Shown piece by piece: positions 4,694 through 60,725 of a stretch of DNA of 64,000 bases. The notes below the pieces were generated by a model. The model was given only the letters and a program-made list of their open reading frames with translations. It ran no database searches and had not been told where the DNA came from. Every line of letters starts with the position of its first letter. The first letter of the stretch is position 1. This DNA is from Adineta vaga (Eukaryota; Animalia; Rotifera), in the NCBI GenBank assembly GCA_021613535.1, contig CP075493.1:11594001-11658000 (forward strand). The letters run 5' to 3'. The translations under genes and the position numbers were made by a program.

Positions 4694-6899
4694 TTACGAA
4701 GATAATGTTTTATTATACAAATGGTTCAAACGTTCAACAAGATCGATAGATTGTTGTCGTTGTGGATGATTTAGTGGCAATTTTGACTCACGAATACGTA
4801 ATGATCTGTATGCATATTCAAGAGCTACTGAATAATTATTCTCTTCAACATATAACTCGCTCAATTCACAACATGTCCGAGCAATTTGTGGATGATCGTT
4901 AGCTTGCAAAGCTTCTCGTATTTTTATAGATTCTTTGAAATAATAAATAGCTTCTTCTCGATTATTCAATGAACGTTGTACAAGTCCCATAATATGTAAT
5001 GTTTGCGCATGAGCTGGTGACTTTTCCGGCATTGTATCTTTAACAAATAGTAATGTGTTTTTTAGTAAGTTCGATGCAGATTCATACTGCTTAATTTGCC
5101 AATATACATTTGCAAGTCGATTTAAATGAAAACCAAATTCATAATGATTTTTTGGTAAAATTCCTCGATAGATAATCATTGCTTGTTCATATAAATTTTT
5201 CCCTCGTAATAGATCTCCTGATTCACAATAGACGTTACCTAAACAGGATAACATACGACCATAAATCATACTCGACTCTGGTAATAAACGTCGTTGTAAC
5301 AAAAGAGCAGCTCGAAGATATGTTATAGACTGTTGACTTTTTCCCATTGCACGATAAACGCGACCTAAACAATAATAGATGATATCCGGTCGATCTTCAT
5401 CATCCCATGATTTAGAACGCAATAAACGATGGAAATAACTTAGCGCCCCATGATAGTTACTAGATATTTCAGATGTAAAATGTCCAAATAGGATTACAGG
5501 TTTTGTTTCTATAAAACGACTTTGAACATGTTGACGATATTCTTGCATAAGTTTAGAAACTTCTGAAGATGAAGTCATTTGAATATGCCAAACACGTTGT
5601 ATTTCATCGTATTTAATATCAATAATAATAAAAGTAGTACCTAAATTGAAGAGCATCTCATTTTCGTCAGGCACCGCACTCTCATTGGATACATCGGCAA
5701 CGACAACATCAGGTGATTTGTTCAAATCAATATCGATTTGAAATAAAACATATTGAAATCGTTCATTGCGACCGCGACTCGGTGACATATCTACAGTCGA
5801 ACTAATACCAATAAAATTTTCAGCAGTATGCAAGTGTCTTGAACATGAAAAGAAACTGTTTGTTGCTACTAATGATCCAACTTCCAGCTTCTCGACTTCA
5901 TCTCGACGAAGTTTTGATCCTCGATAAACGCAAAATGGCGCTGTACAATTGATCTTTGTTAATGCCTTTTCTTCAAGACGTGTACATAAATCAACAATAA
6001 AAAACCGAAATTTATATAACATAAGATTATCTTCAGTACGTAGAGCTCTATTGATTATACGATATAGGAAACATGATTTTGTATACCAATAAATCGCATT
6101 CATTGGAGTATATGTATGTCTAAATTCATCAATTTTTCTCAAATCATGTGGATTAAAACAACAAGCGCGACATTCCGTTAACATATCTCGTTTGGCATCA
6201 TTTGAATTATATGGCATTGCACTCAAGATAACTAAAAGAACAGTGAATATTTAATGAAACGATACCGTAATATGTTTGTCATAATAAGACAATATTGATA
6301 CTAAAAATAAAAGTAGAAATAACCGACTAACCTCTATATGTTTGACTCCATATATATGGACCAAGTTCTTCACGGAGATTTCTCAATGCCTTTTCGGATT
6401 GATTTACAAAAGTAAATAAATCGTCATCTGAATCGTTAAGTTCGTTGATTTGTTGTTGCAATCGAATTTCTAATGACTTATAATCATAAAATACACCACC
6501 AATTTTATTAATTTCATTTCGTGTATAGACCGAAAGATCAGTATCAATACTTTCATGCTGTTCATTCGTCAGAGACACAATGAATATATGTTGTACTTGT
6601 TGATATTGGCATAGTTCAGCAATTTGACTAATATTGATCGAGTCGTTGATGATATTATAAAGAATAATTATATATTCATGTCTTTGTGCTCGTTTCAGAT
6701 ATTTAATGCATTTTAAATTATTCGTACAATGAAAAATATAACAATTATTAAGAGCACGTATATGATTATTTATTGTATCACTGTTGTTTGATACCAAATG
6801 AGGTTCTTCATGTAAAATAATAGTGATGCCAATACGTAATGATGATGGACGACGAAAAATCCGATCTCCACGATTTCGTTTCACATTCAGTTGAGACAT
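4694..6899 (-). CDS. ADP-ribosyltransferase (R-S-E type) + TPR repeat protein, 2 exons
   Basis: WYTKSCFLYRIINRALR, VYRG, FFSCSR and ENEMLF motifs followed by TPRs. Intron ~6232-6330 joins ORF 6327-6899 to ORF 4694-6226. Confidence 0.9.
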
Positions 6900-26396: not shown

Positions 26397-27052
26397 CGAT
26401 GCTATTAATATTGATCGTTGATCTTCAAATAAACAGAGTGTATTATCAATAGAAAATGAATTAGTTTAGTAAATGAATTACTGTCATCGAAGATTATCAA
26501 ACAGTGAGCATTAAATACTTTCTATAGATAGATGATCAAAGATTCTCAGACGTCATCAAATGTAAGAACTCTCACATTGATTGTTATCATATGAGAAATT
26601 TTCAGTAGTACAATAAATAATTTAATGTACACTAGAAGCTCACCTATCTGGAATATGGAATAGAACAAATTGTACTACCATCCTTTTATCAGCATACTTT
26701 CTTATTCAATGCGAGAGCCATGTATTTGAATATGTAACACAAATTGTACATGTATTTTATAGAAGGTTAGAAGTTGTGAAAAAAATGATGTCACTTTTTA
26801 AATATTCATGCGCCTACTACACATTTTTTTTCTTCCTTCGTATTACTCATCACATTTCATTCGCATGAAGAACACATGTTCGATGCGATTTACTCATATG
26901 ACCTTATAAATATAATTACAATACAAACATGTTTGCAATCAATTAGTGACCTCACAGTTTGTAATGAAAAAATCATGATCAGAGAGAGACGTGTATCGCT
27001 AATATTCACGCCCTCAAAATTGTTCTGATACATAGAAATATTTTATCTATTT

Positions 27053-46671: not shown

Positions 46672-48651
46672 ATGAGTCGAAAACCAACGAAGAGCAATAC
46701 CAGTTCAAACACAATAAAATCCAAAGCTTCAACTGTCGCCAAGCCGCCTCCAGCTGCCGTCACAGAAACCCTTGTAGAAAAGTTCAAAAATTCTTGTACA
46801 ACGCAACATTTTGCTTTAGTATGGCTCGATGAAAATTTCGACCAAAACAATCTCAATTGTCGCACATTGGTCGCACAGTTACAAACCATTATTAAAAAGC
46901 TCGATCTTTTTAATGATACGGATAATTGCATAGAATTCATCAATAGTATTCGAAACCTCGATGTTTATCTGATTATATCTAATCCAGAAGAAAAGATACT
47001 TCTTCGTTTTCATCGATTAGAACAAGTGAAAGCGATATTTGTTTTTGATGATACGAATTCATCGAAAGAATCCTGGATTGATCAATGGAAGAAAATTCGA
47101 GGTGCTTACACTAGTGTTGATGCACTATGTAAGTCTGTCAAGGAAACAGCCAAAGATTCCGATAATGAATTGAAGGAATTACATTTTATTTCTTCGAAAG
47201 ATATTGAAACTCGTGGTTTAGATGAACTCAATCAATCATTTATGTATACTCAATTAATTAAAGAAATTATTCTTGAATTGGACTATGGTAATGAATGTGT
47301 CCGAGAATTCGTTACCTATTCTATCGAAAATCGAGATAAATACAAACCTAAATTACAAGGTTTCGAAGAATTTCAACAAAATTACAAAAAACAGAAAACT
47401 CCAGTTTGGTGGTATACCAGAGACATCTTCGCTTATGAATTTGTCAATTGGGCACTGCGTAAACAAGAATTCGATGCGATCATTCGAGCAGGCTTCTTTA
47501 TTAATGATCTTCATCGTCATATTGCCGAATTACATGAAAATCAATTATTGAATGGCAAGACAGAATTGGTTGTCTATCGTGGTCAAGGTATGGATAAGGA
47601 AGATTTTACAGAGTTAAGAAATAGTAAAGGTGGTCTCTTAGCATTCAACAATTTTTTATCAACTAGTAGAGATCCGGCTGTTGCTCAGGGTTTTCTTTCA
47701 AGAGCATTGAAGAAGGGCTTTGCAGTTGGAATTGTTTTCATTATTACCCTTGATCCATCAATCTCATCAGCAGTTTATGCTGAGGTTGATGAGGTTAGTT
47801 GCTACGAGAAAGCAGAGGCAGAAATACTGTTCTCTTTAGCAACGGTCTTTCGTATTGGAAAAATACGACCAGTTCAACGTGATCCAGAAATCTGGGAAGT
47901 AGAACTTAGTTTAACCAGCAATGAAGATAGAGAACTTAATATTCTTATGGATCGTATACGAGTAGAAATCGAAGGATCAACACCTTTATATAAATTAGGT
48001 GCTTTGATGATTAAAGTCGGTCAATATAATAAAGCAGAAGAAATTTATTCTACGTTATTACAAGATACAAAAGATGAAGTAGAAAAAGCTAATCTTAACC
48101 ATCAGCTCGGTTTTATTAAGTATAAGCAAGGAAATCCAAGAAGAGCTTTACAGCTCTATGATGAAGTCTTAAAGGTTTATCAAAAAACTATTGGAGGTGA
48201 TCATAATAATGTTGCTGCGGTATACAACAATATGGGATTAGCCTACGATAGTCTGAAGGATTATTCACAAGCGTTAGTTCACTATCAAAAAGCCCAAAAA
48301 ATATATGAAAAAAATGCATCCACGAATGGACCAATTTTAGCTACATGTTACAATAACATAGCATCAATTTACGATCAAAAGCAAGATTATAAACAAGCAT
48401 TGTCCTACTTTGAAAAATCCTCTCAAATTTACGAAACTCAGTCTAGTGCAAATCATCCAGATTTGGCTACATTGAAGAATAACATTGGACTAGTTCATAT
48501 GAAAACAAATGACTACAAGAAAGCCTTAGAATGTTTTCAAACGGCTGTAAAAATTGGGACAAAAACATTACCTCAAGATCATGCAGATTTGCAGGCATAT
48601 AAAGAACATCTCAAGTTGGTGAATACAACATTAAATAATAAGTATAAATAA
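46672..48651 (+). CDS. ADP-ribosyltransferase (R-S-E type) + TPR repeat protein, intronless
   Basis: FALVWLD receiver-like N-terminus, SFMYTQLIKEI, PVWWYT, VYRGQ, FLSTSRD and EAEILF, then ~5 TPRs. Confidence 0.93.
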   Translation: MSRKPTKSNTSSNTIKSKASTVAKPPPAAVTETLVEKFKNSCTTQHFALVWLDENFDQNNLNCRTLVAQLQTIIKKLDLFNDTDNCIEFINSIRNLDVYLIISNPEEKILLRFHRLEQVKAIFVFDDTNSSKESWIDQWKKIRGAYTSVDALCKSVKETAKDSDNELKELHFISSKDIETRGLDELNQSFMYTQLIKEIILELDYGNECVREFVTYSIENRDKYKPKLQGFEEFQQNYKKQKTPVWWYTRDIFAYEFVNWALRKQEFDAIIRAGFFINDLHRHIAELHENQLLNGKTELVVYRGQGMDKEDFTELRNSKGGLLAFNNFLSTSRDPAVAQGFLSRALKKGFAVGIVFIITLDPSISSAVYAEVDEVSCYEKAEAEILFSLATVFRIGKIRPVQRDPEIWEVELSLTSNEDRELNILMDRIRVEIEGSTPLYKLGALMIKVGQYNKAEEIYSTLLQDTKDEVEKANLNHQLGFIKYKQGNPRRALQLYDEVLKVYQKTIGGDHNNVAAVYNNMGLAYDSLKDYSQALVHYQKAQKIYEKNASTNGPILATCYNNIASIYDQKQDYKQALSYFEKSSQIYETQSSANHPDLATLKNNIGLVHMKTNDYKKALECFQTAVKIGTKTLPQDHADLQAYKEHLKLVNTTLNNKYK

Positions 48652-50570
48652 AAACCAATGATCTTCCGATAAAACTAGAATTGTCTGACATAAAATTCTT
48701 GGGAATCTCGATTCTCCTACATTTCTTAGTGTATTGTTCGATCTTGTTTTCTTTTACGAATGCGTATCATATTTTCTCGACTACAATACTTTAATAAAAA
48801 AACTTTCTCAACCTGCCCCATTATACGAAATGAAAGATAAAGATATGACGGTGATCAGAACAATACGTCGGTACATGATGTTTGTTAAGGGTCATACTTT
48901 GAAAAAGATACTAATGATTAGTCGTTATGTATTTGGCTAAATAGTGAGTAAGTAAATAAGACATGTTCTATCATGTTTCTTTGTCATCATTAATAATGTC
49001 AATTTTTAGCGCACATAATATGATATCGTTTAGACAACATTCGTGAAGAAGTGTACCTGCATCATGTGAAATATATAAGATTTATTATGCTAATTTCTCA
49101 AGTATTTAAAACAAATATAAATTCAATCTCTATGTACATAAACAGAAACAATATATATATATATACTCAGTTGATAGAATGACTTGCTTGATTTTCGTTA
49201 AATATTACTAGAAACAAGATTATAAACGTCAGTTGCATGGCAAAGAATAGATGCTTAGTTAAATCTTCAAGTCAGATAATATTTCAGAAGTCAATGATTA
49301 ACAAACTACATATTGAGTCTCAAATAAAAAGCCTTTCTATCATTATAGTTTTCTTCAAATCATTTTAGAATGTTCTCCTACTTCATTTTGTTACTCATAT
49401 TCACTAATATTAATGGGTTAAACGAACATTTATTCAAAAACATAAATAATGATCAACATAGAACGAGATTGGCAATAAACAATCGTATGGTTCTTTACGC
49501 TGATAATATTTTGCAAGGATTTATAACTGTGAGAAAACCATTTTCATCTAATCCAAATACAGACGATATTGTTTACTCTACAATCATTCAGCAAAGTGGT
49601 TATAATATCTCCTCTCTCTATATACATAATATTGCTACAGGTGCTAAGCCGAACAACAATAGTTCTGTGTTTGCATTGGTAGGAGAAGATCAAAATAATG
49701 ATTTATATTTAATAGTGATGTTGATAGACGTTACTTCTCCTGTTGATATTCGTACTATTTGGAGAAACTTGACACAGCCAAATATTGCAACCGACATAGT
49801 TCTTGGTATAGATTCTGAAAGTGCACATATATATGTCGTTCAACTTTCTTTAACCCTTTACTTCGATGTCAATTCAGAAGAAAGTCGAGAATATTACAAT
49901 AGTGAACTCTGGGATCGTCGAAGATTCATTCGTGGTGAAGCACTTGCTGTTACGAATGATCATCGTCTTTTTTTACTCGCATATAGAATGTCAGGATTTA
50001 AAATACGAGAACACAGGCAGAGATATGATCTTTGCTTATATACCGTTGATCTATCTAATGTGTCTAAGCCAATACCATTGGAAATAGTCAATTGGCCTAT
50101 ATATTTTTCACCGAAATTTCTCTCGGATCATCGAGAATATTCAACCTTATCAATTGTTCTGGATGAAGAACTAGATATATTAATTGCAGGTATTCCATCG
50201 ATTGATACCGTTGTTATTTTATCTATCCGAGATAAATCACAGGGTCCAGTTATTATCAAAGAGCATATTTCATTACAGAAAGGTATATTATTCGGCAAAT
50301 CAGTTGCACTTCTCGATAATAATACATATGCTGTACTAGCTTATGCAATACCAAGTTTAACATGGTTTACTTCTCAAATACAGGTGAGTAATACTAGAAA
50401 ATCTTTAACTAAATTTTAGTTTTATGCTATTTTCCATAGGTTTATTCTCTTTATGATAGGAATAAAAATCAACAACCAAGTTTTGTTTTTCCAAATAATC
50501 AACAGCCACTTCCGAAATCGAATACATTACAAATACCTTATCGTATAGTTAAATTTGTACCATGGGATTC

Positions 50571-50705
50571 TGTTAGCTCGTATTCGAGCTGACGATGTTT
50601 ATTTATTTTGTCTGTCTCAAAAGTAGAAAATAACATAGCTTTATATAGAAAAGGAGAAGGAGAAAGAGAAGGAGAGAGAGAGATATGTATGAATCATCGC
50701 TAACA
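50571..50705 (-). repeat. 3' LTR (135 bp)
   Basis: TGTTAGC...GCTAACA termini. Identical to the other LTR except one GA unit. TATATAAA and AATAAA on the minus strand. Confidence 0.98.
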
Positions 50706-50720
50706 CATCCCCTCTCCCTT
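50706..50720 (-). promoter_or_regulatory. Polypurine tract
   Basis: AAGGGAGAGGGGATG immediately before the 3' LTR. Confidence 0.9.
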
Positions 50721-50839
50721 TAAACGTGTGTCCCCACACGAAGAGTTACAACACAAAGAAAATCGACAACAAGAAAATAAACAACACACCATGAAAATCA
50801 CAAAAAAATTTCATCATGTAGTGTATAAGTACATTAATG

Positions 50840-51317
50840 ATCAAGAATATAATAAAAAATTTGAAGTTTTTGTATTTAATTGCTCGATTTTCTGTCGATC
50901 TTGTTGATTCATAAATTGTAATTTTTCGAAATCTTTACGTAGAATTGATTCACGTTGTTTAATTTGTTTTTTCTCGGCAAGATCACTTTCGATTTGACGT
51001 CGATATTTCATGACTTGTTTTTCCTTGTAACATTCGATAATTGTAGGTAAATTTGATAGTTCTGGTACTGGTGATGATCATCATAATCATGCGATAAGTA
51101 GTATATTGTGTTGTTTGATTTGTTCACATGAATTTAATTCTTCTAATAATGTTTTATCATTATTCCAAACGTGGTTCAATATAATAATATGATGTGTATG
51201 AAGATTTTCGTGGTGATGAACATGTTCCGGTAGATCGAAGTATATGTGATGATGAATATAATGAATTCGATAAACGTAAATCTGGTGAGGATGAGCTAGA
51301 CCAATCAGAATGACCAA
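50840..51317 (-). pseudogene. Possible degraded coiled-coil ORF4 of the retrotransposon
   Basis: SSPVPELSNLPTIIECYKEKQVMKYRRQIESDLAEKKQIKQRESILRKDFEKLQF..., preceded by in-frame stops. Confidence 0.4.
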
Positions 51318-51491
51318 GAGTAATGAAGATGATGACCATGATTGTAATTTGATTTGTAGTTGTCGCTAAAATATTTTGATGTTTGATTTTCATTTGTTTG
51401 TTCATGTTCACTTGTTGTTTCTGTTCTTGTTTTGTTTGTTTTTGTTTGTTTTTGTTTTTGTTTTTTTTTTTTTTTTTTGTTTTTTGTTTTT

Positions 51492-53000
51492 TCATTTTCG
51501 TTGTTTTTTCCATCTAATTTCGAATTGTTTCTTACCAAAATAATCGATTTTCACGATTGATTTGGCTTTTTCTTGTTGTTCGACCGACCTAAATCCGATT
51601 GACACTGTGTCGTGTTTCTCGTTGATTCTGATGTCGTGGCTGTGGTAAACTTCGTCCTCGGCCAATTGGGCTCGAATTTTGTGATAATCATATTCGTCGT
51701 ATATCGGCCTTTTCATCTTCAGTTGAAATTGGGGAAGGTGTTGCTTCTTCCATTTGAGTTTATCATTTTTTCGCCGCTGTATTTCCTTCTTTCGTTGACG
51801 TTGTTCTTCTTCTGTTCGTCGAGGTGGTTGTTGTTGTTGTTTTGGACCTAATTTTGGTTTTAAAATTTCAATTAATTCATCTTCAGTAGCATTAATTATT
51901 TGATTGACATAATCGTTGATGATTTTAATTGTAGTCGGTGGTTCCGCTTCACGATCTAATTCATTTTCAAGATTATGTCCGATTTCAAGTTCGATTTCTG
52001 GTGGTGTTGGATAATCATTCGTTGTTGTTGGATAATTTTGAAAGTAAAGTTCGGCTACTGATGAACAATCATTGATGGCGTATTGTACCATTGATCTACG
52101 TTCTTGTTTTTCTTTGTGTTCATCATATCTACCTTCGCTGAACCTTCTACTTCGCCATGTTTCAAGACTAAGATCCAAACCACAGTTCCATTCATTCTTT
52201 GTGTATGATTTGTCTAAGAATTTGTTGAATTTTTCTGCCACGACCGTTTGTAAACCTAAAGGAGGATTCAATTTTTCTTTCTTTTTATAATTACCAAAAT
52301 TAGTATCGAAGTTCCAATCATCATCATCGACATAGAGGATGAGTTCTTCACCAGGTGTGTCGATTTTCATCGACGCATCGTCGGTTGTCTCACGCCTTTC
52401 CATTTCTGGATGCGTATCGTAAATTTGACTTGGATTACTGATATAAAATTGCAAGTTACATTCACGAATTGCATCTAAATGAATAAGATTTAAATGATGA
52501 AAAGAATCAAATTCTTGCTCGATTGGTCCCCATGTGATTATCTCGTTGTTGTTGCTGAAGATGGTGTCGCATAGTTGTTTGATTTTTTGGTATAATATCG
52601 ATTGTTTGTCCGGCAAATAACAGGTTTCGATCAAAACAACCGTTGAATCAATTGTTGAGTGGATCATTTGGATTTGGATGAGAGCTCCATTTGTTCGTGG
52701 TTCACCTTTCCGTAATAATTTCCATTGAGATTCTGTGTCGACAACGAATCTTCTCGTCTTTGTTGCTTTTTTGATTAAATCTTCAATTGATTGTATGGTC
52801 GATTGATGATGTACGTGGACGATTTCGAGATTTGCTGATGGACGATATTCGGGATGTAATCCTCGAAGTTCTTCATTCTTCTCCATCTGTCGTTGGTTTC
52901 TCATCCAGCTTGATTTTGGTGATTTTGTTGAGTGCATTCTACTATTAGAAAATAAATAAAGTAAATAAAGTGGTTTACTAGGTAGTCTGGCGGCGGTCAT
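51492..53000 (-). CDS. ORF3: DEDDy (RNase D-like) 3'-5' exonuclease with basic/coiled C-terminus
   Basis: VVDTES (ExoI), ALIQI, ITWG...E, LQTVVAEKFNKFLDKS...W and YAINDC (ExoIII). Confidence 0.88.
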   Translation of the reverse strand: MTAARLPSKPLYLLYLFSNSRMHSTKSPKSSWMRNQRQMEKNEELRGLHPEYRPSANLEIVHVHHQSTIQSIEDLIKKATKTRRFVVDTESQWKLLRKGEPRTNGALIQIQMIHSTIDSTVVLIETCYLPDKQSILYQKIKQLCDTIFSNNNEIITWGPIEQEFDSFHHLNLIHLDAIRECNLQFYISNPSQIYDTHPEMERRETTDDASMKIDTPGEELILYVDDDDWNFDTNFGNYKKKEKLNPPLGLQTVVAEKFNKFLDKSYTKNEWNCGLDLSLETWRSRRFSEGRYDEHKEKQERRSMVQYAINDCSSVAELYFQNYPTTTNDYPTPPEIELEIGHNLENELDREAEPPTTIKIINDYVNQIINATEDELIEILKPKLGPKQQQQPPRRTEEEQRQRKKEIQRRKNDKLKWKKQHLPQFQLKMKRPIYDEYDYHKIRAQLAEDEVYHSHDIRINEKHDTVSIGFRSVEQQEKAKSIVKIDYFGKKQFEIRWKKQRK

Positions 53001-53563
53001 TCCGGTGAAAGGTTATCCTTTCGTTCTGCTTTCTTCTGTTTTTCTTCGTAATTTTCCATGCTTTTGTTTTTCGTTTCCTAAAATTTTTCATTCCTTTGTT
53101 GTCCTTTTTCTTTCTTTCCTGTCCGTTATATATATATATATATATACTCGCGTCGTCATATACGCGTATAGATGAAAGTGGCATGACTATATGATCTTGT
53201 TTACATCTTTTTCTTTCCTGTTCTGTGATGTGGTGAGATCGACCGTGTCGTGTTCTTGTAAGGTAATCGGCTTCGTCCATATGGATCATCCGTCGTATCA
53301 TGTCGTCTGCACGTGATCGCCATGATATATCGATTAAATGTTCATATGAATAGAAAAAAAATAGATGTCGCTTATACATATATGACTATGTGATATATAT
53401 ATATATATCTTTGATAGCCCCATCTTATCAGTGAGAAGGGGAAACCTATCTCCCCGACATGATCTGCTAAATCAAATTCATGTATTTTATTCATATAAAT
53501 ATACATTTTAATGAAGTCAATTATGTTCACAGTCGATTTACACCTTTCCCTAGTGGGATGTGC

Positions 53564-56500
53564 TTAGTCATGTAAATTCCATCGTTCTACTAATGGAACG
53601 ATGACATCCATTGTAACTTGTTTTGTTAATGTTGTTTTCTTCACATGTTGTACAATGAATGTTTTTCTTCCTAATTGTTCGATAATTCGAAATGGACCTT
53701 CGTACCTAATATCGAATTTGTTTCGAAAACTTCTGGTTTTAATCAGGACTAAATCATTAATTTTGATCGATAATTCTTGTCGATGTTGATCATATCGAGT
53801 CTTATATTGTTGCTGAGATTTATGAATATTTTTCCGTGCATCATCTGTTAATTTTTCCAGGTAATTTCGAAGTTTTTCTCCATGTTCAGTGTCGTTTGTA
53901 AGTGAAATAAGTGTCCGTTGTTGATCGAATGGAAGACTAGCTTGTCGACCGTGCATCATTTCAAATGGTGTATGTTTTGTTGTTGCATGTATGGATGTAT
54001 TGTAATTAAATGTAACGAATTGCAATATTTCATCCCAATCTGTACGTTGATCATTGCATAATGATGCTATTTTTCCGTCCATTGTTGCATTAAAACGTTC
54101 AATTTGTCCATTTGTTTGTGGATGATAAGCTGTTGTATATAAATGAGTGACACCAAGTTTCTTAAGCAAATTGTTCGTTGTTTCTGCTGTGAAGTGAGTA
54201 CCATTATCAGTTAAAATGCATGTTGGTGTTCCATATTTCAAGATAACATCGTTGGTAATGAAATCAACTGTTGTTTTTGCTGAACAATCGCGAACTGCTT
54301 TTGTTATGACAAATTTTGATAAGACATCGGTTAACGATATAATGTATCGATTACCGCGTCGTGTTGTTGGATTTATTGGTCCATGGAAATCCATACTAAG
54401 TAATCTCCATATTCCATCAGGTGGTGGTATCGGTTGTAATTTTCCTGGTGGTTTTTGACGACGATGATTGTTCTGTGCACATGGTAAACAGGATTTAACA
54501 TGATTTTCAATATCTGCTATCATTGTTGGCCAGTAATATCGTTCTTGTATTTTTCGTATTGTTTTATCACGTCCAAAATGTGCACCATTACCAGGTGTAT
54601 CATGATAAATTTTTAAAATATCAGCACGCATTCTTCCCTGTGGAACAAATGGTACTGCTAAAATTGATGATTTTTGTCTTCGTAATAATAATCCGTCTTC
54701 TATTGTATATTGCTTTTGTTTGTTGATGTTGGTTTTAATTTGTTTCACGACATCATCTTGTTCCTGTGCTTCCCTGAGATTGTCCAAATCAAAGGGTATG
54801 ATCCGATTCGGATCATCCTCCGATTGAGTTTTCGCTTCTTTCCCTTGCGGGATGAGCTCATTCTGCTGTTGTAATTTTGCTTGAGCTCGTGTAATAGCTG
54901 TGATTATTCGTACAGGTGGATGTTCATGGTTGGACGTTGGTGATGATGTTTCTGTTTGTGTTGATTTCGTTTCATATTGGAGTTGGTCGTCGTTATCTTC
55001 ATGAGCTATTTCCACCGGTGATCTAGATAAATAATCTGCCATATTATTCTTCTTACCTTGTATATGCTTCACCTTGAATCGATATTCAGCTAGTCGTAAT
55101 CGCCAACGTTCACACCTTTTGTTCAGTTGTTCTTTGTTGTTGAAGTGGACTAATGGTTCATGATCTGTTTCTAAAATAAATTCCTGTCCACGAAGATATT
55201 TGTCCCATTTCTCCACAGCTTGAACGATTGCATAACATTCTTGTTCGATGGTAGGCCAGTTAATTTGTGTTTTGGTTAATTTCTTCGACATGTATGCTAG
55301 TGGTCGATCACCATTTGGTGTAATTTGTAATAGAACAGCACCAATTCCATCGACACTTGCATCCGTTTGTAATTTAAATTGCATATCATCATCAGGTAAA
55401 TTGAGGATAAGATCCGTTGTTAAGATGTGCTTCAGTTGATGAAATGCTGTTCGTGCTTCTTCTGTTAATTCGAATTTTATTTTCTTGTTATTCTTCTGCT
55501 GTTGTAATGTTGTTGGTGAATATTTGTGTAGTGGTGCTGCAATGATCGAGAATTTTGGAATGAATTTGCGATAATATTCCGCCGCTTTGACGAATCGGAA
55601 TGCCTCTTCTGCTGATGTTGGGTCACGAACAGCTGCTAAATCACGAATATTTTCTGGATCTGGTTGAATTGTACCTTGCTTGATGATGTGTCCGAGAAAT
55701 AATATTTCTGTACGTGCGATTTCACATTTTACTATATTTAACTTGAAATTTGCGTCATTCAGTAATGAACATACTTCTTCAATATGTCGTACATGTTCCA
55801 GAAATGTTCGTGAATATATTATAATATCATCGATGTATGCCAACATGTGCTTCCATCGATTCGGACCGAGTATTTGATTGACAATTCGTTGAAAAGTTGG
55901 TGGTCCATTTGTAAGTCCTTGTGGTAATACTTTGAATTGGAAATGACCATCTCTTGTAGAAAATGCTGTTTTTGGTCGATCGGCTTTGTCTAATGGTACT
56001 TGAAAATAACCTGCTTTGAAATCAAATTTGCTAAAATATGTTGCTTGGGTTAATTGATCATAAATATCATCAATTCGTGGTAATGGAAAAGCATCTTTAG
56101 TTGTAATTTGATTGAGTCGACGATAATCTACACAAAATCTTGTTGTTCCATCTTTCTTTTAACTAGTACTACAGGTGATGACCATGGAGACGTTGAATGT
56201 TCAATAATATCCTTTTTCAATAATTTTTGTGTTTCTTCACGTAATGTTTCTTGGTCTCTGTTGGATTTGCGATATGGTGGAGTATGTACTGGTCTATGAG
56301 TACCTGTATCGATTGCATTCTTCAAAATAATGTCAATCTTTGATGGTTGTCGAAGATCGAATAAATTTCCGTATCTCCATAGGACATTCGTGATCTTGTT
56401 TCGTTGCGTATCGTCGGAAATATGTGAAGTTAATTTTCCAATTTGTTCCCGTATTTCATCAGGATAACATTGTTCACGCAGGTGTTTGAATAAATCGTTC

Positions 56501-57459
56501 TTTGCGACGAATCGTTGTGAACAGTTTCGACATTTGTGCTCGGTGTTGTCTGTTGTTGTTGTCTGTCGATGTTCCGAACTGGCATTGCTAATTCCTTCAT
56601 TCGCTACTTTTCCTTTCGGAATGAGCTGTTCACACGCTTTTCCTTTCGGAATGCGTTCATCGGGATGGTTCGATGGTACTATAAGATTAACCGAATTTGC
56701 CATCTGTGTCACCATACCAATCCGTGTGCCTTCCGAAAGTGTTTGTCGTCGATTCGTTGCATTTATGATACTGATCGTTGCTTTTCCGTCGTTGATGTTA
56801 AGTAATGTACATGCCATAAATAATGCTTTACGTTGTAAATGAGGATTTGGTTCAAATAATGCATCGACTATCTTTTCTTGTTGCAGTTGAGCTTCTATAA
56901 TGTGTTCTGAAAAAGGAGAAAGTGTAATATAATTAACAAGTGTTGCTGGATAATTCAAAATTGGTGGTTTTATAAAAGGAGTTGATACTTCTCTACCTCG
57001 TTTTTTTATCATGATTCGCTTTTCTGGAGTTAATATGTACACACTGTTTGTTTGAATCCAATCACTACCAAGTATTAAATTTGTAACGAGATTTGTTGCA
57101 ACATCAGCAGTCACTTGCGTTGTAATTCCTTCGATGTTGATGAATAATGTTACTTCGCCGATAATGTTCACTGCTGAGCAACTGGCTGATAGATGATTCT
57201 TTGTTCGTGGTATAAATTGTTTGTGCGGGATCTTGTTCAATAGACGTTTGTGAATTATTGTGATGGCCGATCCTGTATCGATTAGTGCTTCTTGTGGAGT
57301 ATTATTGCATAAGATTTTGACAAAGATTGGATTGTATGTTTCAGTTGTTGTTGTAAGTGATGATGTTGATGTTGTTGTCGATGATGATGACTTTTGAACT
57401 CCCCAAGGATCGTCGCCATCAACCGATCCCTTTACTCGAAAAAATAACGTTGCGGACAA
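53564..57459 (-). CDS. pol: Pol polyprotein (protease, RT, RNase H, integrase); one 1-nt frameshift at ~56158
   Basis: ALIDTGS, SPWSSPVVLV, RFCVDYRRLN, YIDDII, LQTDAS, ETDH, HHCC zinc finger, MDFHGP/TDNG/IERFN and EGPF. Confidence 0.97.
57405..57444 (-). promoter_or_regulatory. -1 programmed ribosomal frameshift signal (gag-pol)
   Basis: Slippery T TTT TTC (57444-57438) in the gag frame, then hairpin AAGGGATC-G-GTTG-ATGG-CGAC-GATCCTT. pol lies in the -1 frame. Confidence 0.85.
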
Positions 57460-58445
57460 TCACGTATTCGATGATTTGACTGTCCACATCTAAAGCAACC
57501 ATCTTCCTTCTTATAGAAGCATTGCATCGTCGAATGGTTCGTTCGATTGCAGATTAAACATGGTTTCGACTGTTGAGTCGTGTTCCGTCGATTATTTGGT
57601 TGTTGTCGTACTGTACTTGAACGTCGTTCATATGGTTGATATTCCTGTTGATTTCCACCGGTATGTTGTTGTGCGTATCGGCGATGCGATGATGATTGTT
57701 GAATTGTTGCCGTCGGTAATGTTGATTCGAAATATGGTATTTGTGTTGCTGCTCGTGGTGGTGTATTGCGTTGTTGAATTCGTCGTTGTATATGTTCTTC
57801 TTCCCTTGCCATCAGCAGCCATTCTTCGGGTTTCGAGATATTAACTTCATTTCGAATTAATTGTTCCTTCAATGAATGTTTCACACCTGCTTGTAGTACC
57901 GTAATGATTTGTTTTTCAGTAACTAATCCACTTGCTTTTCGATATTTGCGCATAACCATATCGTAAAATGCTGTAGTTGATTGATCTTCTTCTTGTCGAA
58001 GCTGGAAGAATTCTTGTACTAATTGACCATCTGACGTGAATGTTTTGAATCGATCTCGTAATGCTTCTTCTGCTTCCTTCCAATCACCAAATGATGTTAA
58101 ATTTCCTTGATACCATCGTAATGCTGATCCGGTTAATTTTCCCATCGTCAACAATATTTTTGTTTCATCTTGTAATTGCATTAGCGAGAATAAATTAGTT
58201 AGATCATATAACCATTCATCAATATCCAATTCATTAGATTCTCCCGAATACTCATTAATTTTCTTCATGGCTTCCTGTTGACTGGAATGTAATTGTCGAA
58301 GTTCCATCGAGTTCACATCGGTCGAGGTATTTTTCGTTGCTCCCATCAGCATCGAGGTGTTTTTCGTCATCGTATCGTCCGAGTGCGTTTCGTTCGTCGA
58401 GGTATTGTTTAATGCGGTGTCTTTCGTCATGTTGTGTATAGACAA
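57432..58445 (-). CDS. gag: Gag with two CCHC zinc knuckles
   Basis: KLTGSALRWY, LRQEEDQS, CLICNRTNHSTMQC and CFRCGQSNHRIRDC. True start uncertain. Confidence 0.95.
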   Translation of the reverse strand: MSIHNMTKDTALNNTSTNETHSDDTMTKNTSMLMGATKNTSTDVNSMELRQLHSSQQEAMKKINEYSGESNELDIDEWLYDLTNLFSLMQLQDETKILLTMGKLTGSALRWYQGNLTSFGDWKEAEEALRDRFKTFTSDGQLVQEFFQLRQEEDQSTTAFYDMVMRKYRKASGLVTEKQIITVLQAGVKHSLKEQLIRNEVNISKPEEWLLMAREEEHIQRRIQQRNTPPRAATQIPYFESTLPTATIQQSSSHRRYAQQHTGGNQQEYQPYERRSSTVRQQPNNRRNTTQQSKPCLICNRTNHSTMQCFYKKEDGCFRCGQSNHRIRDCPQRYFFE

Positions 58446-58784
58446 ATTTTTCGTGTGTTTTGCCGACGTGTTTGTTTTGATGATTACGTTATTATTTCGT
58501 ATGGATAAAGGTTTGCACTTATTCTCTTTGTTCTTCTTCGAATGCCGTCAGCCGTGTTCGTATAGATATTTTCAAAGAATGAAAGCGAATCGTATATGTG
58601 AAGAATACTATACCTTCTTCGACTGAATAATTTCAGTAATTATAATTAATAATTTTGATTGATGAATTCACCTGACTCTCTTTCCGTCACGGATGAAATA
58701 ATAATCACTCTTTCCTGATGAAGGATGAGTTTATAAAGACCTGGTACTTGATTCTTTTTCGATGGAAAAAAATAGAAAAAGACC

Positions 58785-58797
58785 GGTCACGGCACCA
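58785..58797 (-). promoter_or_regulatory. Primer-binding site, tRNA-His type
   Basis: TGGTGCCGTGACC, 3 nt inside the 5' LTR, complementary to the 3' end of eukaryotic tRNA-His (…GTCACGGCA-CCA). Confidence 0.85.
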
Positions 58798-58800
58798 ATA

Positions 58801-58937
58801 TGTTAGCTCGTATTCGAGCTGACGATGTTTATTTATTTTGTCTGTCTCAAAAGTAGAAAATAACATAGCTTTATATAGAAAAGGAGAAGGAGAAAGAGAA
58901 GGAGAGAGAGAGAGATATGTATGAATCATCGCTAACA
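58801..58937 (-). repeat. 5' LTR (137 bp)
   Basis: Direct repeat of 50571-50705. Confidence 0.98.
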
Positions 58938-60725
58938 GATTCACATAATATCGGTATTTTACTTAATCCTCTCAATATTCTTCTTCTTCCTGCAAGTTCT
59001 CCAGGTTATTGTAGTAGTCTGATTAGCAGATACGATGATTCCGTATTTGCAATGTATAAGTCACAGCCGTGCATTTCCGGTACTCATAAACGAGACAAGA
59101 GCTTTGGTCCTTGTAGCATATGTCCAATGCATTCAAAAAATAATGGCAGCTTTGGAATTCATTGCGAAAAATGTTCTACAACAAATACATCTTTATGTTT
59201 TCCTGGTGCTGCAGGCGAAATCGATATCACTGAACTGGCAACATATGATCAAGCAAATCCTTATCCAATGTCACCTGAATCAACACAATTCGAAGATCTA
59301 CTGCTTCAAAATATTTTAGCATTTCCCATCATTACTACCCAATGTCTTTTTATTTCACCTGTTTTTTGGGCTTGTATACTTATTATCGTTTGTTTGATAT
59401 TCTTCATAGTAATCAAACTTATTCTATCTCGTTTGAAACATCAAAATGGGACAACAATTCTCAAGAATATTTTTATACGTATCGATTTCATCGGTGAAGG
59501 ACAATATTGGTTAGGTGGACTCATTTCACTTTCTCTTTTCGTTCTTGTTACGTTTGCTTGTAAGTTTAGTATTTCCTTTGCAAATCTATATCCATACGAA
59601 GAAACGTCAATATTCGAACGAATAAGTGCTACATGTGACAGTTCATTGATTAATGCCAAATTTAGTAGTTCATTACAGCTACTTTCAATACATAAACCCC
59701 AAGAAGAGAAACCAATTTTCGATTTACTCGATAATCAAAATATAAGTTTAGGCGTGCAATTTGTCAGTACAGCTTTTACTTGTGATAATCTAACGGTTCA
59801 ACAAATTAGAGATCATGGTTTAAACATTCCGACAACAATTTCTAATTGTTCTCAGAATAATAATATTCTTTATATTAAAACTATGTTACCGAAAAAAATT
59901 GGTACAATACAATTTGACTTAGTTGGTCCACATTTTGTTGGAGGACTTCGTCTCTGTCTTTCTGCTCCAGCCGTGTCTATTGATAACGATAGGTATACAG
60001 CTAGACAAATGGATTTTTGTCACTTCTTATACGTACCGAACCAAATTATAACATCAAATCCAAAAATTAATGTGAAAATGGTCAAAGTAATCAACCGAAC
60101 AGCAAGCATGATGTTCGACGATGATGTCATTTACAGTGGTCTGTGGTTGCCTACACTTACTTCGACTAGTCTAACAGATGAATCACTCTTTTTGCAAAAA
60201 GGAGAATTCTATCATTATTTACCGACGGAAACAATCGTCGTTATTGATATAACAGAATCGGAATTTTTTATGAAGAATACACAAGAACCAATAGCACGAA
60301 CGTATGAGATAACATTCAACACCATCCTATTCTCAAGTAAGATCGAAAGAGTTCTCAAAAATATATATCTAAGAATTGCTTTCAAAATATTTTTATTTTA
60401 GTGTTATGTTTAGATTTAGTTGGACTTCTCTTTATTGTATTTAAAATGGTTATTTATCCGGTGTTTATGTTGGTTCAAAAATATGTAACTGACAGAAAAC
60501 GGATAAATACTTGATGATGAAGAAGGACAAGAAAGTTCATGATCAACTCGACGCTTATTTCTGAAATTAAATTAATTGATTGAAGTTTTTTTTATAAATA
60601 TGATTGTATCTATCTGTCATGACATTTTTTACCATCTTGAGGATATATACGGAAAGGCGAAGAGAAACTAATAGAGGAAATATCGAGTTAGTCGAATTCA
60701 TTGTAATATTTTCTCAAAACTATGG

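Follow-up and report, generated by a model that had tools for sequence, protein, structure and literature searches.

A family of seven small RNA hairpins on the sense strand of a bdelloid rotifer LTR retrotransposon

Organization of the element

The stretch of Adineta vaga DNA analysed here (hereafter the window) covers 64,000 nucleotides, positions 11,594,001 to 11,658,000 of contig CP075493.1 (assembly GCA_021613535.1), and contains a complete LTR retrotransposon of the Ty3/gypsy type. The element is 8367 bp long, lies on the minus strand and is organized as follows (coordinates are those of the window; the hairpins are numbered s1 to s7 in the sense direction):

50571-58937 (-), the complete Ty3/gypsy-type LTR retrotransposon, 8367 bp
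58938-58942, target-site duplication GAATC, with the second copy at 50566-50570
58801-58937 (-), 5' LTR, 137 nt, from TGTTAGC to GCTAACA
58783-58797 (-), primer-binding site as read from the sequence alone, starting TGG, 3 nt after the 5' LTR
58707-58730 (-), hairpin s1, in the 5' leader 53 nt after the primer-binding site; loop of 5 nt
58677-58698 (-), hairpin s2, in the 5' leader; loop of 3 nt; the weakest copy
57432-58445 (-), gag, a single open reading frame with no interruption seen
53564-57459 (-), pol (PR, zinc finger, RT, RNase H, IN), broken once by a frameshift, with no in-frame stops
56634-56656 (-), hairpin s3, in the PR-RT linker; GAAA loop; no bulge
56603-56626 (-), hairpin s4, in the PR-RT linker 30 nt after s3; GAAA loop
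56467-56532 (-), zinc finger C-x2-C-x12-H-x4-C in the PR-RT linker, just after s3 and s4
54834-54857 (-), hairpin s5, in the RH-IN linker; GCAA loop
53541-53562 (-), hairpin s6, non-coding, starting 2 nt after the pol stop codon
51492-53000 (-), ORF3, resembling a DEDDy-type 3'-5' exonuclease
52392-52415 (-), hairpin s7, inside ORF3 in a different reading frame; GAAA loop
50708-50721 (-), polypurine tract, ending 2 nt before the 3' LTR
50571-50705 (-), 3' LTR, 135 nt

The two LTRs differ only by a 2-nt indel in a (TC) run. The Pfam domains occur in the order gag, PR, RT, RNase H, IN; within gag there are matches to Retrotrans_gag, to Ty3_capsid (27.1 bits, below its cut-off of 29.1) and to zf-CCHC, and the protein has two CCHC knuckles. 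Three full-length relatives each align over the whole of pol, as two stretches in two frames with 0 stops. The zinc finger of the PR-RT linker had no Pfam match at E up to 0.01, but it is conserved in the rows shown from all three clades of relatives. The ORF3 product scores 21.0 bits against Pfam DNA_pol_A_exo1 (cut-off 23.6), and 4 of its 68 homologues carry PF01612. The closest named proteins come from Rotaria and Adineta, and an Adineta vaga pol protein (UniRef A1YGS5) is 59% identical. The carrier is of the kind described as Vesta and Juno, LTR retrotransposons of the same bdelloid hosts with the same gene order and, judging from the sub-threshold Pfam score, probably the same DEDDy-type ORF3 (PMC5408684).

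Seven copies of one hairpin

The first-pass annotation had reported seven dispersed, co-varying copies of one hairpin on the sense strand of this element, and that observation is confirmed: all seven were read back letter for letter at their minus-strand positions. A simple descriptor (CAT, 3 nt, a loop of 3-5 nt, three Watson-Crick partners, then AAAG) gave 7 hits on the sense strand of the element, 0 on its antisense strand and 1 in 111,308 nt of flanking DNA (both strands). All 7 also have at least 3 further outer pairs, against a background chance of 0.083 per site. In 5000 dinucleotide shuffles of the sense strand the mean was 0.093 hits (maximum 3), and only 0.0088 when the outer stem was required. 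Since the motif had been defined after seeing the sites, we also scanned every 3-nt/4-nt flank signature around any 3-bp hairpin; this signature ranked first with 7 copies, the next best having 2, while the maximum was at most 4 in 300 shuffles (4 being reached in 6 of them) and in 12 host segments.

A covariance model built from four of the sites (s4-s7) recovered the three held-out sites, s3 at 28.9 bits, s1 at 15.9 bits and s2, more weakly, at 10.6 bits (E 2.5 in the window, 0.32 within the element), and found nothing else in the element on either strand. Of the 19 matches with E up to 10 in the window, 7 were these sites and 12 were in host DNA, only one of the latter scoring above 12.4 bits. 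In an alignment fitted to this model, 56 of 56 pair cells are standard pairs, against 78% after shuffling and at most 55% with slid partners, and 5 of the 8 pairs change on both sides.

The structural details given in the first-pass annotation also hold. The internal loop, with one A opposite two A, is closed by C-G and U-A pairs in 7 of 7 copies; the top pair of the stem occurs as all four Watson-Crick combinations (CG 4, AU 1, GC 1, UA 1); and 4 of the 7 loops are GNRA. Some corrections are nevertheless needed. The copies s3 and s4 are a 30-nt tandem pair sharing 17 identical bases, leaving 6 independent copies rather than 7. The statement that the copies lie in different reading frames is only partly right, since three of the four coding copies (s3, s4 and s5) share one frame and s7 uses another. 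Finally, for s6 and s7 the minimum-energy fold prefers a 1x3 loop over a 1x2 loop plus bulge.

As isolated structures the hairpins are weak, with fold energies of -3.5 to -7.9 kcal/mol (-5.4 for s1). In context folds the pair probabilities of s1 (0.65-0.91) and s6 (0.83-0.84) are high, but s2 (about 0.02), and s3 and s7 with flanks of 100-200 nt (0.00-0.09), are mostly not formed. A search of Rfam 15, which includes export and packaging elements, gave a single match at E up to 1, a snoRNA model on the opposite strand at 22.4 bits against a gathering score of 40, which we take as chance. Nor did literature searches find a description of this hairpin family, and the words hairpin, stem-loop, secondary structure and packaging do not occur in the paper on Vesta and Juno (PMC5408684). 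By reading, the motif is not a kink-turn, which has a three-base bulge followed by tandem sheared G.A pairs, because the internal loop holds only adenines and is closed by C-G and U-A in all seven copies.

Constraint on nucleotides in coding sequence

As had been claimed, the copies lie in tolerant places: the leader, the PR-RT and RH-IN linkers, just after the pol stop, and a variable insertion in ORF3. At the four coding copies, synonymous resampling keeps the hairpin in only 0.10-0.35% of trials (272, 211, 330 and 709 of 200,000 at s3, s4, s5 and s7 respectively), indicating a constraint on nucleotides rather than on the peptide.

Bdelloid relatives were compared as proteins only, and so the comparison covers the coding copies but not s1, s2 and s6. 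The positions are shared with relatives at 68-83% identity, and in bdelloid relatives the encoded peptides form conserved islands in variable linkers. Peptides compatible with the hairpin are found in 22 of 29, 23 of 29, 40 of 42 and 54 of 59 rows at s3, s4, s5 and s7, whereas the more distant pol proteins have 1 compatible window in the same frame in 93,013 residues. Free and fixed positions match the structure. The residue encoded by the loop varies freely; the codon holding the bulge at s5 reads only E, G, V or A (42 of 42, never D); and the s7 column that holds the last loop base and two stem bases reads M 37, R 13, T 7, K 1 and G 1, but never L, I or V. Covariation is visible even in the amino acids: in 100 rows we find P..G 81, S..E 8, S..G 4, P..E 0 and other 7, that is, C-G changing to U-A by way of U.G and never by way of C.A, as expected if the sense strand folds. 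These counts are not corrected for shared descent, and S..E, which arose at two sites and in at least two groups of relatives, reflects few events. Further paired variants are also present in the relatives.

The conditions named beforehand as capable of overturning the claim (antisense strand, host DNA, shuffled sequence and sister elements) all came out in its favor, the sister elements through their proteins alone.

Possible role of the hairpins

The interpretation offered in the first-pass annotation is partly supported. What the analysis establishes is that the sense strand carries one co-varying family of small hairpins, each with a 3-4 bp lower stem, the A/AA internal loop, a 4-bp upper stem and a mostly GNRA-like loop; that they are kept by selection on nucleotides; and that related bdelloid elements, so far as their proteins can show, keep them at the same places. 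Any function, including the suggested binding to Gag, the pol zinc finger or ORF3 and a role in packaging or export, is inferred from sequence alone. With respect to the zinc finger, one point counts mildly against it as the specific reader: it is conserved in all three clades of relatives, including the 78 listed relatives at 54-60% identity, which show at most 1 hairpin-compatible window in the same frame in the 93,013 residues mentioned above.

Our preferred, though tentative, explanation is that the hairpins are repeated binding sites for one RNA-binding protein made by the element, most likely the nucleocapsid part of Gag and, as a second candidate, the exonuclease-like ORF3 protein. Such a protein would recognize the unpaired adenines displayed on the helix, and several weak sites spread over 6.3 kb, two of them beside the primer-binding site, would together mark the full-length RNA as the element's own and favor its capture into particles or its coating by Gag. 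The support for this is indirect: s1 and s2 lie 53-120 nt after the primer-binding site, where retroviral packaging elements sit, and Gag has its two CCHC knuckles. Against it, there is no copy in gag or in the last 1.7 kb of the element; s6 and s7 lie after pol and would also be present on any shorter ORF3 transcript, so that they could not by themselves mark the full-length RNA; several of the hairpins are mostly not formed in context folds; and retroviral nucleocapsids favor unpaired G, whereas the invariant unpaired bases here are A.

The same logic underlies the dispersed packaging signals of single-stranded RNA viruses, the MS2 TR-like stem-loops, in which several individually weak stem-loops are spread along the genome, including its coding parts, and vary around a small shared motif that includes an unpaired A on the 5' side of the stem (PMC6281560). 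Those, however, are coat-protein sites of icosahedral viruses, demonstrated by binding and assembly work, whereas here the carrier is an LTR retrotransposon with a Gag protein, there are only seven copies, the shared motif is invariant in all of them and the binding is hypothetical; that paper only suggests that Gag-like proteins might work similarly. Retroviral leader packaging elements (Psi) likewise display unpaired purines close to the primer-binding site. A purine loop plus the primer-binding site is reported as critical for MMTV encapsidation (PMC8096270), and HIV-1 SL1 has an asymmetric purine internal loop. But Psi is one compact domain in the leader, between the primer-binding site and gag, a position shared by s1 and s2 only, while 5 of the 7 copies lie across pol, the pol-ORF3 spacer and ORF3, and all are the same module. 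The yeast ASH1 mRNA zipcodes E1, E2A, E2B and E3 are four dispersed small stem-loops, three of them inside the coding region, with a minimal shared motif read by one protein complex and with RNA structure superimposed on the coding sequence; they are, however, a host mRNA localization signal with no known sequence likeness to this hairpin. The constitutive transport element of simple retroviruses has repeated A-rich internal loops read by an export factor, but it has two loops in one element of about 150 nt near the 3' end.

How Ty3/gypsy-type retrotransposons recognize their own RNA is poorly known, and this element offers a clean, countable handle on the question: a 22-24 nt module, repeated seven times and kept in relatives even where it must be written through protein-coding sequence. 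The finding also shows that RNA structure can be read from protein alignments alone, since residues encoded by paired bases change together while those encoded by the loop and the bulge vary freely within one codon family. If a reader protein is found, the system would extend the dispersed packaging-signal idea from RNA viruses to retroelements and would provide a simple marker for sorting bdelloid retroelement lineages.

A less likely alternative is that the hairpins are read by a host protein, as repeated signals for nuclear export, translation, stability or localization of the transcript, in the manner of the constitutive transport element or mRNA zipcodes. The structural and conservation evidence fits this equally well, the presence of copies in every part of the transcript, including after pol, would suit a signal needed by all of the element's RNAs, and small GNRA hairpins with an A-rich internal loop are generic protein and RNA docking modules. 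However, the 78 listed relatives at 54-60% identity come from the same host genera and have just the one compatible window, so elements in these hosts do not generally need this signal; host DNA in the window has one weak match, and no export element was matched in Rfam.

It is unlikely, though possible, that the hairpins act RNA on RNA, the GNRA-type loop of one copy docking into the helix or A-rich internal loop of another, either within one RNA to compact it or between two RNAs to pair genomes. Besides the four GNRA loops, the loop-encoding residues of relatives could spell a purine-then-A ending in 84 of 100 rows at s3-s5, and at s7 the first loop base is G in 54 of 59 rows and the last is A in 58 of 59; moreover, the upper stems hold consecutive C-G pairs, which are GNRA docking sites. 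But three of the seven loops in the window are not GNRA and have 3, 4 or 5 nt, the invariant part is the internal rather than the apical loop, and the loops are not self-complementary and cannot form a kissing dimer. A role in reverse transcription, as pause, strand-transfer or internal plus-strand priming sites, also seems unlikely. The 3' arms are indeed purine runs of 7-12 nt, similar in composition to the polypurine tract, and the copies are spaced 1.1-2.0 kb apart along the template; yet priming from a purine tract needs no complementary 5' arm, whereas it is the pairing that is conserved, and an 8-bp hairpin is a weak obstacle to a polymerase.

Still less probable is that the motif is a peptide, I-P-x-G-K, serving as a protease processing site, with the pairing as a by-product. 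Three copies do share one frame and lie at the two junctions where retroelement polyproteins are cut, and I, P, G and K are highly conserved in relatives. As the sole explanation, however, this is contradicted: three copies are non-coding and one is in another frame, only 0.10-0.17% of synonymous codings of the peptide form the hairpin at s3-s5, and variation follows codon families and pairing rather than residue similarity, although a double use of the peptide is not excluded. Chance matches, or small mobile palindromes that happened to insert into the element, can be dismissed, despite the A-rich sense strand and the post-hoc motif, in view of the shuffles, the signature scan, the positions shared with relatives and the single weak match in host DNA.

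Perhaps, and this is a more speculative and less likely reading, the hairpin is a lineage-specific self-mark, a short modular RNA tag co-evolving with an element-encoded reader that would let one retroelement lineage capture its own RNA and ignore the RNAs of the many other retroelement families sharing a bdelloid genome. New copies would arise by small duplications, as with s3 and s4, and survive wherever the protein tolerates eight extra codons. The sister clade at 54-60% identity lacks this tag but shows another repeated peptide motif at the same two pol linkers, which could be the trace of a different tag.

The sense-strand hairpin family

All seven strings that the first-pass annotation had described as copies of a single RNA hairpin (referred to here as s1 to s7, in their order along the sense strand of the retrotransposon) were recovered on the minus strand at the coordinates it had given, and its observation is thus confirmed. 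To quantify the family we converted the description into a simple descriptor: CAT, three bases, a loop of 3-5 bases, three Watson-Crick partners and then AAAG. This descriptor hits 7 times on the sense strand of the element, 0 times on its antisense strand and once in 111,308 nt of flanking DNA, both strands being counted. Although the descriptor did not require it, all 7 hits also have at least 3 further outer pairs, for which the background chance in this strand is 0.083 per site. In 5000 dinucleotide-preserving shuffles of the sense strand the mean was 0.093 hits (maximum 3), and only 0.0088 when the outer stem was demanded as well. Since the descriptor was derived from the sites themselves, we also performed an unbiased scan, in which the 3 bases before and the 4 bases after every 3-bp hairpin with a 3-5 nt loop were taken as a signature and the copies of each signature were counted. 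The signature of this family has 7 copies and the next best has 2; the best signature never exceeded 4 in 300 shuffles (4 was reached in 6 of them), nor did it exceed 4 in 12 host segments of the same length.

A MAFFT alignment of all seven sites put the copies with 3-nt and 5-nt loops and the copy without a bulge out of register, and a covariance model was therefore built from the four sites that did align (s4-s7), the other three serving as held-out tests. The model found all three: s3 at 28.9 bits, s1 at 15.9 bits and s2 at 10.6 bits, the last being weak (E 2.5 in the window and 0.32 within the element). It detected no further copy in the element on either strand. Of 19 matches with E up to 10 in the window, 7 are these sites and 12 lie in host DNA, and only one of those 12 scores above 12.4 bits. 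This single match, which is also the lone host hit of the descriptor, lies at 26514-26537 on the minus strand (18.8 bits, E 0.0068 in the window); it is AT-rich, has no retroelement nearby and is probably due to chance. With the seven sites aligned to the model, a procedure that favours the pairing because the alignment is fitted to it, 56 of 56 pair cells are standard pairs, as against 78% after shuffling of the partners and at most 55% with partners slid by 1-3 columns; five of the 8 pairs change on both sides.

The structural details of the first-pass annotation hold: the two pairs closing the internal loop are C-G and U-A in 7 of 7 copies, the top pair occurs as all four Watson-Crick combinations (CG 4, AU 1, GC 1, UA 1) and four of the 7 loops are GNRA. 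Three corrections are nevertheless needed. The copies s3 and s4 are a tandem pair 30 nt apart sharing 17 identical bases, so there are six independent copies; three of the four coding copies share one reading frame, rather than lying in different frames; and for s6 and s7 the minimum-energy fold draws a 1x3 internal loop instead of a 1x2 loop plus bulge. The hairpins are also weak, at -3.5 to -7.9 kcal/mol, with z-scores of -0.6 to -3.8 when folded in isolation. Pair probabilities in context range from 0.00 to 0.93: only s1 and s6 are formed with high probability throughout, s3 and s7 are lost with longer flanks, and s2 is not formed, either in context or in the fold of the leader (z -1.05). 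Energy alone neither proves nor refutes the structures, and it is the comparative evidence that carries the case.

The carrier element and the placement of the copies

The hairpins lie in a complete LTR retrotransposon on the minus strand. The coordinates of the features of this element, and of others in the window, are as follows:

50571-58937, minus strand: the complete LTR retrotransposon
58801-58937: 5' LTR, 137 nt
50571-50705: 3' LTR, 135 nt
56467-56532, minus strand: classical-type zinc finger in the PR-RT linker, just after s3 and s4
51430-51500, minus strand: long A-rich low-complexity tract at the end of ORF3
About 53130-53150 and 53395-53410, minus strand: short (TA) runs in the pol-ORF3 spacer
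58917-60401, plus strand: ORF of 494 aa, without a Pfam match, that starts inside the 5' LTR and runs into the flank
4694-6226, minus strand: host ORF combining an NAD:arginine ADP-ribosyltransferase domain with TPR repeats
46672-48651: a second TPR protein of the host

The two LTRs differ only by a 2-nt indel in a (TC) run, so the insertion is very recent, although pol carries one frameshift. The sequence GAATC is duplicated on both sides, a primer-binding site starting TGG lies 3 nt after the 5' LTR and a polypurine tract ends 2 nt before the 3' LTR. Pfam finds a retrotransposon Gag with a CCHC knuckle (the Ty3 capsid model scores just below its cut-off), an aspartyl protease, RT, RNase H and integrase. 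The gag gene reads as one open frame, whereas pol is broken once, by the frameshift, with no in-frame stops; three full-length relatives each align to it as 2 stretches in 2 frames with 0 stops. ORF3 weakly resembles a 3'-5' exonuclease (21.0 bits against a cut-off of 23.6), the DEDDy type of ORF3 being that described for the Juno and Vesta families of bdelloid rotifers (PMC5408684). The closest proteins come from Rotaria and Adineta; the best hit is 83% identical, and an Adineta vaga pol protein is 59% identical. The element itself is an ordinary member of the bdelloid Vesta/Juno kind. The rest of the window holds ordinary host genes (TPR proteins, a GMC oxidoreductase and a 7TM receptor), and no other retroelement was seen in it.

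Within the element, s1 and s2 lie in the leader, 53-120 nt after the primer-binding site; s3 and s4 lie between the protease and the zinc finger that precedes RT; s5 lies between RNase H and the integrase zinc-binding domain; s6 starts 2 nt after the pol stop codon; and s7 lies in ORF3, after the exonuclease-like stretch. There is no copy in gag or in the last 1.7 kb.

Constraint on the RNA or on the peptide

The principal alternative to an RNA signal is a peptide signal, and it had to be considered seriously because s3, s4 and s5 share a frame and all encode I-P-x-G-K at the two junctions where a polyprotein is usually cut. To distinguish between the two we first kept each peptide fixed and redrew synonymous codons from the element's own codon usage. 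The hairpin descriptor was then satisfied in only 272, 211, 330 and 709 of 200,000 trials at s3, s4, s5 and s7 respectively, that is 0.10-0.35%. So the peptides do not produce the hairpins by themselves; the silent positions are set to pair.

The second line of evidence comes from relatives, compared as proteins only and hence at the four coding copies, leaving out the non-coding s1, s2 and s6. Of 1407 pol hits, the best 120 were examined; all 42 of these with at least 68% identity formed the near set and the other 78 the far set. In the near set, the peptides at s3, s4 and s5 are islands of conservation in linkers that otherwise vary and carry large indels. The same holds for s7 among 68 ORF3 homologues down to 37% identity, except that in the five most distant (P0184-P0188) the peptide matching 52392-52415 is missing while the flanking motif is kept, so that s7 looks like an insertion into the exonuclease-like protein. 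We then asked whether some choice of codons for each relative's peptide can form the hairpin, rows with a gap in the motif columns being dropped beforehand.

Compatibility of the peptides of relatives with the hairpin, by site.
s3: 22 of 29 rows compatible (14 of 43 rows dropped)
s4: 23 of 29 rows compatible (14 of 43 rows dropped)
s5: 40 of 42 rows compatible (1 of 43 rows dropped)
s7: 54 of 59 rows compatible (10 of 69 rows dropped)

The background rate is low, with 1 compatible window in the same frame in 93,013 residues of the 78 more distant pol proteins, 0-4 in the other frames, and 12 at most in 93,830 residues of a second, more diverse set.

The pattern of free and fixed residues follows the RNA model base by base. 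The residue spelled by loop bases varies widely. In contrast, the codon that starts with the paired G, holds the bulge in its middle and ends with a paired base reads only E 15, G 13, V 9 and A 5 at s5 (42 of 42 rows, never D), and G, V, A or E in 25 of 29 rows at s4; the next residue is A or V in 71 of 71 rows. At s7, which is in the other frame, the codon holding the last loop base and two stem bases reads M 37, R 13, T 7, K 1 and G 1, but never L, I or V, the replacements that protein chemistry would favour, and the codon holding the first loop base starts with G in 54 of 59 rows. Moreover, residues spelled by paired bases change together. Over 100 rows at s3-s5 the combinations are P..G 81, S..E 8, S..G 4, P..E 0 and other 7 (Fisher test, p = 2.7e-9, not corrected for shared descent), with S..E occurring at two different sites and in at least two groups of relatives. 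In terms of bases, this is C-G changing to U-A through the wobble U.G and never through C.A, as expected if the sense strand folds. Further paired variants (I-L-x-R-K, I-L-x-E-K and I-F-x-E-K) appear in single relatives. The protease-site reading is consequently rejected as the sole explanation.

Possible roles and comparison with described RNA elements

The hairpin family matches no Rfam model, a scan at E up to 1 having given nothing usable, and inspection of the bases ruled out a kink-turn, a tetraloop receptor and a kissing dimer. Searches of the full-text literature, which left out subscription papers and supplements (the latter, for PMC5408684, may hold family sequences or annotation bearing on this point), found no description of such hairpins in rotifer or other LTR retrotransposons, and the main paper on these elements (PMC5408684) does not use the words hairpin, stem-loop, secondary structure or packaging. 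By analogy, the hairpins would work like dispersed packaging signals, and partly like a retroviral leader element or mRNA zipcodes.

What the analysis establishes is a sense-strand hairpin family kept by selection on nucleotides across a clade of elements, whereas any function, including protein binding and the marking of RNA, is inferred. The interpretation offered by the first-pass annotation is therefore partly supported: its claim of selection on RNA is borne out by evidence that it did not have, while its functional reading is plausible on sequence grounds alone. Our preferred, though tentative, view is that the hairpins may be repeated binding sites for a protein of the element, the first candidate being the Gag nucleocapsid with its two CCHC knuckles and the second the exonuclease-like ORF3 protein. 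Such a protein would read the three unpaired adenines on the helix, and the summed weak sites would then mark the RNA as the element's own. In favour of this view, two copies lie beside the primer-binding site, where retroviral packaging elements lie, and the design matches published dispersed packaging signals, which are variable stem-loops with a small shared motif that includes an unpaired A (PMC6281560). However, s6 and s7 would also be present on any shorter ORF3 transcript, and nucleocapsids favour unpaired G.

Among the alternatives, a host reader acting in export, stability or localisation is rather unlikely but survives best. RNA-RNA docking through the GNRA-like loops is unlikely, and a role in reverse transcription slightly more so. 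A purely peptide motif is very unlikely, and chance, or mobile palindromes, can practically be dismissed.

The zinc finger in the PR-RT linker (C-x2-C-x12-H-x4-C, with the usual F and L) is a poorer candidate for the reader than Gag or ORF3. It had no Pfam match at E up to 0.01 and is conserved in the rows shown from all three clades of relatives, including clades without the hairpin, so there is no association between the two. The clade at 54-60% identity, which includes Adineta vaga A1YGS5 (relatives P0040-P0067 and similar, proteins only), lacks I-P-x-G-K but has another repeated peptide motif, roughly [EK]-R-N, then 6-7 residues, then [RQH]-S-C. This motif occurs once in the PR-RT linker and twice in the RH-IN linker, that is, at the same two places (matching 56600-56660 and 54830-54900), but reasoning on its codons by inspection alone gave no convincing stem for a second hairpin type. 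Finally, a third group (relatives P0068-P0120, proteins only) shows yet another short conserved island, S-D-S/P-L followed by E-E-N-R-I-I, in its otherwise variable RH-IN linker.
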